Translations under genes and position numbers: made by a program
Shown here: piece by piece, positions 18,958 to 23,496 of the stretch
Numbering within the stretch: position 1 is the first letter of the stretch
Layout: each line of letters begins with the position of its first letter
Origin: Selaginella moellendorffii
Taxonomy: Eukaryota; Plantae; Lycopodiophyta
Reading direction: 5' to 3'
NCBI RefSeq assembly: GCF_000143415.4
Contig: NW_003314271.1
Location: 2,152,806 to 2,216,805 of the forward strand
Length of the DNA stretch: 64,000 nt
Notes under the pieces: generated by a model
What the model was told of the DNA's origin: nothing
Database searches by the model: none
The model's input: the letters and a program-made list of their open reading frames with translations, nothing else

Positions 18958-20436
18958 TCAATTTTCTGATTCTGCAATCTCTTCCATGGTTTTCGTCTCT
19001 TGCTCTAGCATTTTGTCCAGCCTCTCACGATACAGTGCCAAATCCTGGAAACAAAATTGACAATTACCAACTTCCATCGGAGAAAATGAGAAGCAGAATT
19101 ACTTACTGGAGTAAATGCGTATGGACCAGTGGAATCGGGGCTTATGGGACTTCCACGCCGCAAAAATTTGCCGTCCTTGAACACGTAGAGCATTGGGACT
19201 CCAGTCGAAAGCTCAAGTTCAATCACCTTGAGTAAAAAACATGCCTGAGAATTTTCTAGCCAAACGGATTAAAACTTTCTACCTCTTGTGGTGTAAGGCT
19301 GTCGAGATACATGATGATCGATCGTAGAGAATTTCCATGCGCAGCGATCAAAACGTTCTTGCCACTGGAAAGCTGTGGTTCGATCTGCGAGAGAGAAAAG
19401 AAAAAAGATTGAATTTTTTGCTGGGAAAGTTTTAGGAATACCTCTCTGCAAAAATAGTCCACGGCTCTCTCAGCGCACATAGCCAAACTCTCTCCGTTTG
19501 GAGGAGGAACGTCGTAGCTTCGTCTCCATTCCTGGACCTTTTGGACGCCATACTTCTCGGCGGTCTCTTTCTTGTTTAGTCCCTGGAGCTCGCCATACCT
19601 GGACGCTTTGCTTCAATGAGAACTATCGGCTTGAAAAAAGAGACAAGTACTCACATTCTTTCGTTGAGCTCCCAGGCAGTAAAAACTGGGATCGTTTCGT
19701 TCTTCGTCTTCGAGCTGAATACGGTGCTCCAGGAATTTGCTCGGCTGCTTTCGTTGTGCAAAATCACGGGCACCTAAAACAAAAGAAAAGAAATATTTTT
19801 TGAGAAAAGAGAAAAACAAAAAACAAAACTCAAGAACTCTTTTTTTTTTTTTTTTACCTTCTTCATGCGGTGCTGAGTCATGGCAAGCATGGCGGTCATT
19901 TGAGCTCGAATCAAAGCGGACGTAAAGATCACATCAACTGGCAAATTCGAAATTCTCTTGCCTGCTTCAATTGCCTCTTCGACACCTTCACGAGAAAGTG
20001 GAACGTCTACACATCCCGTGAAAAGATTCTTCTGGTTCCACAGCGATTCACCATGTCGGATGAGGATCAATGCAGATTCGCCTGACCACAACACACACCG
20101 TAAGTTAAGTCGGAAGATTTGTTGTTTAAGACCTCCATGAACAGTGAACTGGAAAAATATCTAGAAAAAAAAGAGAGCAAAAGTTGTCGTCTTACTTGTC
20201 GATGTTGGAGACGAGGGAGTGTCGTCAGCTATGGTTGGAGTGGAAGACACAGCTCGAATTTGGAGGAAGAACTTTGCGTTCTTCTTCTTGAGGTTGAGAG
20301 CCATAGCCTTTGGAGGATTTCTGCTGAGAAAGCTCACTCTACTGGTGCTTCCAAGGCTCCATGACGATCTCCCAGCAAGTAGTTCCTCCGAGGACCAGCA
20401 CACGGATCTAGCACCGATGGAAGTCGCCGAGGCCAT
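18958..20436 (-). CDS. 2,3-bisphosphoglycerate-dependent phosphoglycerate mutase-like protein (histidine phosphatase), with transit-peptide-like N-terminus, multi-exon
   Basis: LILIRHGESLWNQKNLFTGCVDVPL, PPNGESLAMCAERAV, VLIAAHGNSLRSII, ELSTGVPMLY. Ser/Arg-rich N-terminus. Confidence 0.9.
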
Positions 20437-21049
20437 AGCTCTCTAGAATTTGGAGACAAGCACCACAAGTTTGTAAGAACTTGGATCACGCGAAACACAC
20501 CCACATTAATCGAGCAAAGCATGCACAGGCCGAAAGCCCAGAAAAAAATTCGAAGAACACAGACCGAAGAAAAAAAAAACAAATTTGGGCGAATTCCTCA
20601 AAGAAAAGCTACCTGGACTTGCCGAGCGATCCCTCCCAGATCTGCGAACGCGAATCCAAAATCTCGCCCCCAAGGCGAGGAGAGATCTCTCAAATGTAGA
20701 GCGCACGCGCGCGGCAGCCTTTGTGGAAGAACGGTAGGTGAGAGAAAGAGCGTTGAACGAGGTAGAGCGCACACACTAGACACGCTAAATGTGCGAGGAA
20801 AAGGAAGAAGCGACCATAGATTTCACTTGGAAGCCTCCGCCCACGCTTGAGCGGCCCTCGTTCAACAAAACCATGCAAACAGGAAGAACCCTAGTGTAAA
20901 AAAGGAAGATTCTCGCGTCGGTAAATTCTTTTCAAACGCCAGCCGTGGATCTCCGAGGTTAAATTTGAGTTATATTGGACGGGCAGGATTGAAAAGCTGG
21001 GGGTATATAATTGTAGGGCTTGAGGAGATTTTAGGGCGAGAAAGGAGCG

Positions 21050-22297
21050 ATGGAGGTCGGCGTGGAGCTATGGCGCACGCGCAGGCTTCTCGGCGATCTG
21101 AGCGAGATGCAAGGTAACGGGACGAGCATGATCACGCTCATGGTGCCGCCCCGAGATCAAGTGGCTAGGGTCCAGAAGCTCTTGGTGGAGGAGATGGGGG
21201 CGGCGGCGAACATCAAGAGCCGGACCAATCGCCAGTCGGTCCAGGGCGCCATCAAATCGGCCCAGCAGCGGCTGAAGCTCTACTCCAAGGTGCCGCCCAG
21301 GGGCCTGGCGATCTTCGTGGGGACGATTGCTCTAGGGGGCAACAAGGACAGGATGATTGCCGTGAGCTTTGAGCCCGCCAAGCCCTTGAGCCGGTTTGCG
21401 TATCTCTGCGACAAGAGATTCCACACGGAGCTCTTGGACTTCCTGCTCGAGGAGTCCGAGACCAAGTATGGATTCATCGTCATGGACGGTAACGGGACCT
21501 TGTTTGGGACGCTCAGTGGGGCTTGACGGTTAATCCTCGACAAGTCCAGCGTGGACTTGCCGAAGAAGCACGGCCGGGGAGGGCAGTCGGCCTTGCGATT
21601 CGATAGACTAAGAACCGGGTGCCGCCATAACTATCTCGTCCAGGCATCCGAAGCTGCCGTGAAGCACTTCATCGATCCCAGCAGCAGCCAGGCCAACGTT
21701 GCGGGATTGATCCTCGCGGGGAGCGCCGATCTCAAGACGGAGCTGGAGCCCTTGCTGGATCCCCGGCTGAGGGCCAAAGTTCTCAAGGTGGTGACTATAT
21801 CCCATGGAGGAGAACGGGGGTTTAACCAGGCGATCGAGCTCTCGGAGGATGTTCTAGCCAGCGTGAAGTTCGTCCAGGAGAAGAAGCTGCTGGGGGAGTT
21901 CTTCGAGGAGATCGGAGTCTGCTCCAACAAGCACGTATCGGGGATCAGGGACACGCTCCAGGCGTTGGAAATGGGAGCGGTGAAGAGCTTGATTGTTTAC
22001 GAGGATTTGGAAACGAGGAGGTATGTCTACGACGATCCTCAGACCGGGAACAAGGTGACCAAGGTTTTGAGCAAGGAGGAAGCGAAGGAGGAGGTTCCAA
22101 GGAACAGAGAGGTGGAAGATAAGGCTCTGGTGGAGTGGCTTGCGGAGGAGTACAAAGGGTTTGGGTGCGAGCTACACATAATCACGAATCACACGGAGGA
22201 AGGGTCTAGCTTTTGCTCGGGATATGGAGGGATTGGAGGGATTCTTCGCTATCCACTGGACTTTGCGGCCATGAACGAGGAAGGAGACGAAGCGTAA
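21050..22297 (+). CDS. eRF1: Eukaryotic peptide chain release factor 1, intronless, with one in-frame TGA at 21524-21526 (readthrough candidate or young pseudogene)
   Basis: ORFs 21050-21526 and 21551-22297 are in the same frame. GTS, NIKS, YLCDKRF, KKHGRGGQSALRF and GGIGGILRY motifs are all present. The junction reads TLSGA*RLILDKSSVDLPKKH, collinear with canonical [21 protein letters not shown]. Confidence 0.9.
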
Positions 22298-22564
22298 GCC
22301 TTAAGCTATGTGTTAAGTATTTCATTGTCATTGTCTCATTGTTAGTCTCATTGTCATTGTCATTGTCTCTCTTAATATGAATCCATACATTTTTCCAAGT
22401 CTTTCAGCATGTTTTTGCTAGAAGCTTATCACCTAAAGTTTGAGCAATAGACTAAATTGACAAGAAATTTAGAGCACTAGAGAGATCTTTCACTGGATTT
22501 CTTCAAGTGGCAAGAACTACAGCAATGAATGTCTACATTGAAAGCACGAAAACTTACAAACTTT

Positions 22565-23496
22565 TTAGCCACCAAAAACTCTTGAGGCAGACGATTTGGC
22601 CATGGAGGATATGAAGGTGAGGCCCGAGGAGCCACCTGGGAAGTAGGATATGACATAGTAGAGCAAAGCCAGAAGCTGCAAATACGCAAAAAGAAAAGAA
22701 GCAAACTTGATTTTTCGAAGTAGCTCGGGCTTACCTGAACTACAGAGAAAAGAACTGAGAACAAGTAGCTGTGCAACACCATCGACGCGTAGATCGTCGC
22801 CACAATGCTTCCAACGAAGGCCGCAGTGAAAGGCAACCTCTGCAAATCCAAAAAAGAAAGAAAGAACGAAAGCGTGAGACCACCAATCCATGGAACAAAT
22901 CTAAGAACTTCTCACCTCCTGCGAGATCATGTGGGCAAACTGCGCGCGAGGACCTTTCAGCGCGAAGAAGGATCCCATGACGAGCAGACATCCGATCGTG
23001 AAGCACGACGCAAACTTTTGAGGCACGAGAACGATCACCGGCAAGAACATAGTGAAGGAGATGAAGAGGAAGAAGACCCCGGATCCCAGCAGCAGAGCAA
23101 AGTATGTGATCGCCTTTCCAGAAGGAATGCCGCTCGTCGCCGATTGTACGCTTCCAGGAAGCTCTCTCACGCCCTTAGACAACCTGGGATCGTCAACAAA
23201 GAAAACATGAAACTAAACAAAGAATTGTGTGCGAGCATAGCACGGATCGGGCTCTAGAAACCAGGATCTGGAGAGGAAACGAGATCTTACGTGCTGAATG
23301 CGCCGGAGATTGTGTTGTTGGCGGATTTGAAGAGCGCGCCGGCTTCCACATCCAGACCCCCGGCCTCCTGGCGCGATACCTCCGCGTAGGAATTCCACTG
23401 CGATAGAAGGCTAGGAGCTCCATCGCCAGCAGCTGCATCGCCGCTGGGGCCACCATTGAACCAGCCCTGGAGCATCGCCTTGCCACTCCCCCACAT
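22565..23496 (-). CDS. Got1/Sft2-like vesicle transport protein, multi-exon
   Basis: SLLSQWNSYA, VLVPQKFASCFTIG, LKGPRAQFAHM, RLPFTAAFVGS, LLYYVISYFPGG; four hydrophobic segments. Confidence 0.85.

Follow-up and report, generated by a model that had tools for sequence, protein, structure and literature searches.

How can a gene for the eukaryotic class-I release factor eRF1 give rise to a complete protein when an in-frame UGA stop codon breaks up its own coding sequence? This question is raised by an eRF1 paralogue in the nuclear DNA of Selaginella moellendorffii, which occupies positions 21050-22297 on the plus strand of the 64-kb stretch of DNA that was analyzed here (the window). The reading frame of this paralogue extends from an ATG at 21050 to a TAA at 22295-22297; it comprises 415 sense or stop positions in a single exon and contains no frameshift. 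Its sole internal stop is the TGA at 21524-21526. An initial annotation, which was made from the letters alone, had described one TGA in 415 codons and no frameshift, and the reading frame bears this out. The explanation that we favor, with a probability of roughly 0.6, is that the gene is a live, expressed and very divergent eRF1 paralogue, which would be translated in full length by programmed readthrough of the UGA.

The UGA divides the coding sequence into two parts, which together cover all domains of an eRF1 protein. The first part (21050-21523, plus strand) has 158 codons and encodes the N domain, which serves in stop codon recognition, together with the initial ~20 residues of the M domain. 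The second part (21527-22297, plus strand) consists of 256 codons and the TAA; it encodes the rest of the M domain with the catalytic GGQ motif and the C domain, which binds eRF3. The same division is seen in the Pfam assignments, with eRF1_1 (PF03463, E = 2e-18) before the UGA and eRF1_2 (PF03464, 4e-25) and eRF1_3 (PF03465, 8e-26) after it. The initial annotation was thus correct in stating that a product truncated at the UGA would be the N domain (eRF1_1 only, plus the ~20 M-domain residues) without the GGQ motif, which lies downstream. In addition, the part after the UGA matches the eRF1 chain of the PDB entry 8ip8 with an E value of 2e-86.

All of the functional motifs that had been listed as retained could be located on the plus strand of the paralogue. 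These are the decoding motifs GTS (in NGTS, 21119-21127), NIKS (21209-21220) and YxCxxxF (YLCDKRF, 21401-21421), as well as GGQ (in GRGGQS, 21578-21586); the GIGGILRY region is also preserved. The UGA itself takes the position of an invariant Thr in canonical eRF1 (GN-T-RE), and the CGG codon for Arg directly 3' of it (21527-21529) aligns with an invariant Arg. With its three-domain architecture, its decoding and catalytic motifs and its descent from plant eRF1 (see below), the predicted protein qualifies as a member of the eRF1 family. Inspection of the reading frame revealed no in-frame ATG between the UGA and codon ~306, and a separate initiation of the downstream part is therefore implausible. 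As in prfB and in the release factor gene of Mimivirus, a full-length factor requires recoding at the internal stop: the frame holds one UGA, which is not removed by splicing, and no ATG before codon ~306.

The first point to settle is whether the UGA is real. The initial annotation had considered a sequencing error as an equally possible explanation of the stop. For comparison we used the other haplotype in the S. moellendorffii assembly, which is represented by the allelic locus L001 (GL377594.1), and the Logan contigs of four public runs from four studies, which were aligned to positions 20300-23300. One of these runs is DNA (X16) and three are RNA-like (X1, X2 and X14). L001, which had been proposed as a control, has no sense codon at this place; it carries the identical TGA, CGG and hairpin. 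No variant was found at the TGA in the DNA run X16 or in the RNA-like runs X1, X2 and X14. The DNA run stems from a different study and holds two variants, 21921 G>T and 22096 T>C, which are absent from both assembled haplotypes. Because both haplotypes, an independent DNA run and the RNA-like contigs all carry the TGA, the idea of a sequencing error is rejected.

The same contigs provide information on the transcript. The RNA type of X1, X2 and X14 is an assignment by guess, and their depth values were not used for ranking expression. These runs behave as RNA because they show CT..AC joints, which correspond to GT..AG introns on the minus strand, in both neighboring genes, and because they have zero depth over the intergenic positions 20906-21006; no such joints occur in X16. 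Over the paralogue the contigs of X1, X2 and X14 span from 21022/21046 to 21627/21825, and they show no joint and no difference at the stop. Furthermore, 18 RNA-like runs from 8 studies contain 65% or more of the words in this stretch. The paralogue is transcribed with the TGA in place, and its transcript is unspliced. This result also answers the question of transcription, which the initial annotation had raised.

The absence of splicing is relevant to the existing gene models. Two models of the Joint Genome Institute (JGI), SELMODRAFT_440399 and SELMODRAFT_416122 (387 aa), one for each allele, avoid the UGA by means of an 84-nt GT..AG intron at 21466-21549 on the plus strand (3417-3500 in L001). 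This interval, which skips the stop, is an intron only in the JGI models. It is an annotation artefact, because no junction is seen there and because its 28 codons specify a block, GFI.MDGNG.LFGTLSG, that is invariant in eRF1. Another public annotation (P0241) lists just the 158-aa N-terminal product. The UniProt and NCBI entries for the paralogue are therefore wrong in either form (387 aa or 158 aa), and the public gene models, one with an invented intron and the other with a fragment, are hereby corrected.

Other ways to overcome the UGA were also considered. RNA editing of the stop finds no support in the RNA-like contigs, which read TGA, albeit a minor edited fraction could escape the contigs. 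A variant genetic code seems unlikely, as the other genes of the genome and the TAA stop of the paralogue itself look standard; furthermore, there is no tRNA gene in the 64-kb window. A reading of the UGA as selenocysteine would require a machinery which land plants are not known to possess.

The comparison of the two haplotypes indicated that the reading frame downstream of the UGA is under purifying selection, with the reservation that the polymorphism may predate the stop. Of the 1248 coding positions, 13 differ between the assembled alleles; 11 of these differences are synonymous and two are conservative replacements (I288V and D357E). All four differences upstream of the UGA are synonymous, and the nine downstream comprise seven synonymous ones and the two conservative replacements. 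For these two haplotypes the synonymous polymorphism per site (pS) in the coding sequence is 0.039 and the nonsynonymous polymorphism per site (pN) is 0.002. The resulting pN/pS ratio is 0.054, and for the part downstream of the UGA it is 0.084. Hence the ratio is not near 1, as it should be in a pseudogene; selection downstream of the stop was another issue that the initial annotation had wanted to see checked. In the flanking DNA the haplotypes diverge by about 2.1-2.3%, and the coding pS is at least that large.

The excess of synonymous differences was evaluated by simulation. When random mutations with the observed spectrum were placed in the gene, a mean of 3.9 was synonymous and not one of 20,000 trials reached the 11 synonymous differences that were found. 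In a simulation that was confined to the downstream part, the seven synonymous differences among nine stand against 2.8 expected (p = 0.0047). The two extra variants in X16 contribute one synonymous and one nonsynonymous change. A McDonald-Kreitman-type test gave p = 0.0007 with uncorrected counts and 0.008 with Jukes-Cantor counts (range up to 0.009). The present constraint on the gene is significantly stronger than its long-term average, which is the opposite of what decay would predict. Other signs of a pseudogene, namely multiple lesions or a loss of transcription, are likewise missing: all haplotypes contain the one stop, and RNA-like contigs span the gene. Around the stop the alleles are identical over 194 nt (21434-21627). 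The nearest differences are at 21433, which is 91 nt upstream, and at 21628, which is 102 nt downstream.

The origin of the paralogue was addressed with a maximum-likelihood tree. It places the paralogue within the clade of land-plant eRF1 proteins (support 100/100), without a settled placement inside this clade. The terminal branch of the paralogue has a length of 4.5 substitutions per site compared with a median of 0.04. Its identity is 55-59% to canonical eRF1s from streptophytes, 57-59% to those from land plants, in line with the initial description of this copy as divergent. The canonical eRF1s from land plants, including that from Selaginella (P0107), are 83-91% identical among themselves. 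Between the paralogue and the canonical Selaginella eRF1 we obtained a nonsynonymous divergence (dN) of 0.35 and a synonymous divergence (dS) of about 1.0, which is close to saturation.

The changes in the protein are not evenly distributed. Out of 241 columns that do not vary in the range from Klebsormidium to angiosperms, the paralogue retains 76%; of the variable columns it retains only 35%. The retention of invariant columns is alike on either side of the UGA, with 72% upstream and 79% downstream. The paralogue is thus derived from a plant eRF1; its rate of evolution has been about a hundred times that of its parent, under a constraint that is still shaped like that on eRF1. An origin from a giant virus was also considered; it is ruled out by the position within land-plant eRF1 (100/100). 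The lack of introns is uninformative on whether the gene is a processed retrocopy, since the coding sequence of the canonical Selaginella eRF1 is also a single exon.

The canonical gene of S. moellendorffii (P0107; 2501-3814 and 3812-3935 in L002) has some features of its own. It encodes NIKN in a place where nearly all eRF1s have NIKS, and its stop codon stands in the context UAG-GAA-UUU. Its 3' untranslated region (UTR) contains a GT..AG intron-like interval at about 3881-3931 of L002, ~66 nt past the stop. This is a geometry of the type that elicits nonsense-mediated mRNA decay (NMD), like that of eRF1-1 in seed plants.

The context of the UGA resembles a known readthrough signal. The type II motif consists of UGA followed by CGG or CUA, often with a 3' stem that starts 7-12 nt past the stop (Firth et al. 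2011, PMC3159437). The sequence around the stop of the paralogue is GCU-UGA-CGG-UUA-AUC. It is followed on the plus strand by a hairpin at 21537-21563, TCG/a/CAAGTCCA/gcg/TGGACTTG/c/CGA, which has an outer helix of 3 bp, then a 1x1 mismatch and a stem of 8 Watson-Crick bp, with a GCG triloop on top. The spacer between the UGA and the outer helix is 10 nt long and that between the UGA and the 8-bp stem 14 nt; the 10-nt spacing is within the range of the type II motif, with a structure that is compact and not extended. The CGG after the stop and the hairpin ~10 nt downstream of it had been reported at first sight, and every coordinate was correct.

A 41-nt window with the hairpin has a predicted folding energy of -15.0 kcal/mol (z = -3.9), and none of 200 shuffled sequences was equally stable. 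The fold of 101 nt around the stop was not significant (z = -0.9). Only 1.3% of the synonymous recodings of the same peptide reach an equal fold stability. For a background we used the 3070 codons of seven coding regions. A 41-nt downstream window of equal stability occurs at 2.2% of these codons, and a perfect stem of at least 8 bp, which starts 6-16 nt past the codon, is found at about 0.1-0.2% of them. The triplets CGG or CTA account for 1.6-2.9% of the codons. Together, these data indicate that the combination of the UGA-CGG context with the hairpin is unlikely to be the result of chance.

The canonical Selaginella eRF1 has a latent and imperfect pairing in the same place, with 5 Watson-Crick pairs, 2 GU pairs and 1 mismatch. 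It differs from the perfect stem of the paralogue (8/8 Watson-Crick pairs) by three changes, TTC>TCC, GAT>GAC and CTG>TTG. The latter two are synonymous; TTC>TCC places a Ser at a conserved hydrophobic site. The initial annotation had attributed the fully Watson-Crick stem to this Ser codon. The stem is indeed perfect, but TTC>TCC is only one of the three changes that are needed. It had furthermore called the replaced Phe conserved. A Ser (TCC) is present in the paralogue as described, but the Phe is not invariant: it occurs in 17 of 21 canonical streptophyte eRF1s, and the other four have Val or Tyr. In view of these numbers the position is strongly conserved as hydrophobic, though not invariant.

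Readthrough has to be weighed against the view that the gene is a recent unitary pseudogene. In that case a nonsense mutation in a fast-evolving paralogue was fixed by drift; the gene is still transcribed, most of the polymorphism is older than the stop, and the CGG and the hairpin are coincidental. Several observations speak for such a scenario, against readthrough, or both. The divergence of the paralogue is extreme (a branch of 4.5 versus 0.04), with 24% of the otherwise invariant residues replaced, which fits a long period of relaxed constraint. Orthologues or truncated N-domain frames from elsewhere were not found; word-index searches of proteins returned just the two S. moellendorffii alleles at more than 60% identity, a blank which is not proof of absence since the searched collection also misses the Logan-derived proteins of the paralogue itself. 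The 194 identical nucleotides around the stop are compatible with a recent origin and a short conversion tract, and the differences between the haplotypes may be older than the TGA, should the latter have spread by recombination or a short gene conversion. Also, the product is listed in one public annotation as a protein of 158 aa. The signal itself is not ideal: the viral consensus xxA-stop-CGx-xxx-xxG is violated by a U at -1 and a C at +9, the hairpin is short and compact compared with the extended structures in Firth et al., which have stems of 10-12 or more bp, and the sequence that encodes KFTVDL gives any eRF1 gene some of this pairing in latent form. Finally, the assignment of the runs as RNA is a guess, and minor isoforms, spliced or edited, may go unseen in Logan contigs. 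Of the viral type II motif, the UGA-CGG and the 3' stem that the initial annotation had named are thus present, but the flanking A and G are not.

A pseudogene would, on the other hand, require three coincidences, namely a UGA, a type II codon next to it (about 2-3%) and a hairpin at the right spacing (about 0.1-2%), with a joint probability of about 1e-4 to 3e-4. It also has to cope with a pN/pS of 0.05 overall and 0.08 downstream, with the lack of a second lesion across 415 codons in any haplotype, and with the assembly of the mRNA over its full length in many RNA-like runs, despite the expectation that a premature stop followed by ~900 nt would make it a target of NMD. The initial annotation had put a young pseudogene on an equal footing; with the 11:2 and 7:2 ratios of synonymous to conservative differences and the unspliced transcription this option is weakened, and we now consider it unlikely, albeit not to be neglected. 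It is improbable that the 158-residue N-domain fragment is the functional product, for example as a modulator that binds stop codons, with the downstream part as a relic and any readthrough as incidental. All decoding motifs are present in an intact N domain, the four upstream haplotype differences are all synonymous, and termination would be the majority outcome at any leaky stop; but this view leaves the purifying selection downstream (7:2, p = 0.005) and the retention of 79% of the invariant residues and of GGQ unexplained, and the fragment would end 20 residues into the M domain within a conserved block of beta-structure. Still less credible is a 387-aa protein from a transcript in which the UGA is spliced out with the 84-nt interval of the JGI models. 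This interval has canonical ends and a plausible size, is in frame and is included in both models. Nevertheless, the joint is absent in three RNA-like runs that do show the introns of the neighboring genes, the loss of the invariant block would remove core strands of the M domain, and the SNP-free and the synonymous patterns alike fit a coding sequence (SNP, single nucleotide polymorphism). An error in sequencing or assembly is refuted, as is a rare allele in the plant that was sequenced, because the TGA is present in both haplotypes, which were assembled independently, and in four runs that come from four studies. With error rejected and the pseudogene weakened by the 11:2 differences (7:2 downstream) and by unspliced transcription, readthrough of the UGA is the best supported explanation.

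If readthrough takes place, the full-length paralogue would be made solely through translation of the internal UGA as a sense codon. With the UGA in the ribosomal A site, the base of the hairpin stem would be at +14, which is at the mRNA entrance of the ribosome, and the CGG context would weaken the recognition of the UGA by eRF1. Most ribosomes would presumably terminate at the UGA and release the 158-residue N-domain fragment. A fraction of them would insert a near-cognate amino acid and thus generate a complete N-M-C protein with GGQ. The UGA suppressors of plants reportedly are tRNA-Trp, tRNA-Cys and tRNA-Arg(U*CG), a set that is ascribed to Beier and Grimm in 2001.

Termination at the UGA would also affect the stability of the mRNA. 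It would leave 771 nt of open reading frame and at least 130 nt of UTR, i.e., an effective 3' UTR of ~900 nt. The trigger of NMD in plants is a 3' UTR of 350-400 nt (Nyiko et al. 2017, PMC5397192). NMD would be expected for this mRNA because ~900 nt is well above that trigger, and readthrough would then shield the mRNA from decay. Since readthrough competes with eRF1, the output of the long form would be inversely coupled to the efficiency of UGA termination: poor termination would raise it, and efficient termination would lower it. The level of readthrough would in any case be set by the canonical eRF1 (P0107). The long form is a putative release factor that may close an autoregulatory loop, or it may serve instead as a backup or modulator. 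Readthrough as such, its level, its coupling to NMD and a feedback on termination are inferred from these features; that the paralogue itself feeds back on termination or on its own synthesis is conjecture. A tentative scenario, which we regard as possible yet rather doubtful, is that S. moellendorffii has a second, fast-evolved eRF1 gated by readthrough of its own UGA. This protein would be made as a sensor or backup, with its mRNA stabilized against NMD, when termination drops.

The surroundings of the gene are compact. A TATA-like box, TATATAA, is present upstream of the paralogue at 21004-21010 on the plus strand, and the RNA-like contigs start at 21022 (X14) and at 21046 (X1 and X2). These starts suggest a very short 5' leader, with the caveat that contig ends are not proof of a transcription start. 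The DNA run X16 has insertions of 7 nt and 4 nt at 21011-21012, immediately past the TATA-like box and hence inside what is presumably the core promoter; they are an allelic difference that could affect the transcription start. The upstream neighbor on the minus strand (within 20300-21046) is, by homology with L001, a His_Phos_1 (phosphoglycerate-mutase-like) gene. It has a spliced 5' exon from 20613 to about 20900, next to an intron at 20443-20612. Only ~130-150 bp separate the 5' end of this gene from the start of the eRF1-like gene, and the promoter region between the two genes is therefore probably bidirectional.

The 3' UTR of the paralogue extends at least over 22298-22428 (plus strand), a position that the contigs of X2 and X14 reach, and adjoins a convergent Got1-like gene at that gene's 3' end. 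Shortly past the TAA, at about 22322-22370, it contains an imperfect short tandem repeat, CATTGT / CATTGTCT. A scan of 20900-22500 with Rfam gave no match. The Got1-like gene lies on the minus strand at 22428-23183, with introns at 22676-22734 and 22840-22915, as annotated via L001. RNA-like contigs continue from the 3' UTR of the paralogue into this gene, which implies that the 3' ends of the two genes abut or overlap. On the other allele the 67 nt at 22429-22495 are swapped for about 24 unlike letters. Other open reading frames in the window are typical of land plants: pentatricopeptide repeat (PPR) proteins with an E motif, a UDP-glycosyltransferase and a CK2 beta subunit.

The hairpin and the codon context of the paralogue can be compared with the type II signals of viruses (Beier & Grimm classes; PMC3159437). 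Both have UGA-CGG and a paired element ~7-12 nt past the stop. The viral stems, however, are usually at least 10-12 bp long and close a loop of ~100-150 nt, whereas the Selaginella hairpin is compact with 8+3 bp and a triloop. Tobravirus-like sites conserve A at -1 and G at +9, where Selaginella has U and C. If confirmed, the paralogue would be a natural example of the viral type II signal, UGA-CGG plus hairpin, in a cellular gene of a plant. It would also offer a compact (~60 nt) cassette to probe the interplay of eRF1 dosage, mRNA structure and NMD in plants.

Release factors with recoding sensors are known from bacteria (frameshift in prfB), from giant viruses (readthrough plus frameshift) and from seed plants (readthrough of the natural stop plus NMD). 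Searches of the full-text literature found no paper that describes a nuclear eRF1 gene with an internal readthrough stop from a cellular eukaryote. The full-length RF2 factor of bacteria, encoded by prfB, is made only if an early internal UGA is poorly recognized, which generates a negative feedback (PMC3521657, PMC5397192). The paralogue shares with prfB the internal UGA in a release factor gene. The bacterial gene, however, uses a +1 frameshift with a Shine-Dalgarno stimulator, belongs to the unrelated RF2 family and encodes a factor that demonstrably recognizes its own UGA; for Selaginella we propose readthrough.

In the plant eRF1-1 system, which is documented for seed plants, readthrough of the natural stop acts together with an intron in the 3' UTR and NMD (Nyiko et al. 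2017, PMC5397192). The same authors set plants against bacteria and viruses on whether the readthrough stop is internal or natural. As in eRF1-1, a leaky stop and a sensitivity to NMD, the latter inferred for Selaginella, would tie eRF1 activity to expression, and neither coding region has introns. The natural stop (context CAATCA) is the leaky one in eRF1-1; the functional protein comes from normal termination, and the readthrough product is inactive. The leaky stop of the Selaginella paralogue is in contrast internal, and the functional protein would come from rare recoding, as with bacteria and with giant viruses. The trigger for NMD also differs: it is a 3' UTR intron in eRF1-1, whereas in the Selaginella paralogue we propose the long downstream region.

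The nearest precedent is the eRF1/aRF1-type factor of giant viruses (Mimivirus R726 and Megavirus mg280). Its gene has an in-frame UGA followed by C, for which autoregulation was proposed (Jeudy et al. 2012, PMC3521657); according to this study, readthrough inside the sequence that codes for a class-I release factor was unreported in any other lineage. In the viral gene, as in the paralogue, an in-frame UGA-C has to be read through for the full protein, and a short product ends at that stop. The viral gene requires in addition a +1 frameshift and has its stops in the 5' region; Selaginella has a single UGA at the boundary of the N and M domains, with CGG and a hairpin. Moreover, the Selaginella paralogue is not viral; it is a cellular nuclear gene that branches inside land-plant eRF1. 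If confirmed, it would represent a fourth, independently evolved solution and the counterpart, in a cellular eukaryote, of the autoregulation in prfB and Mimivirus.

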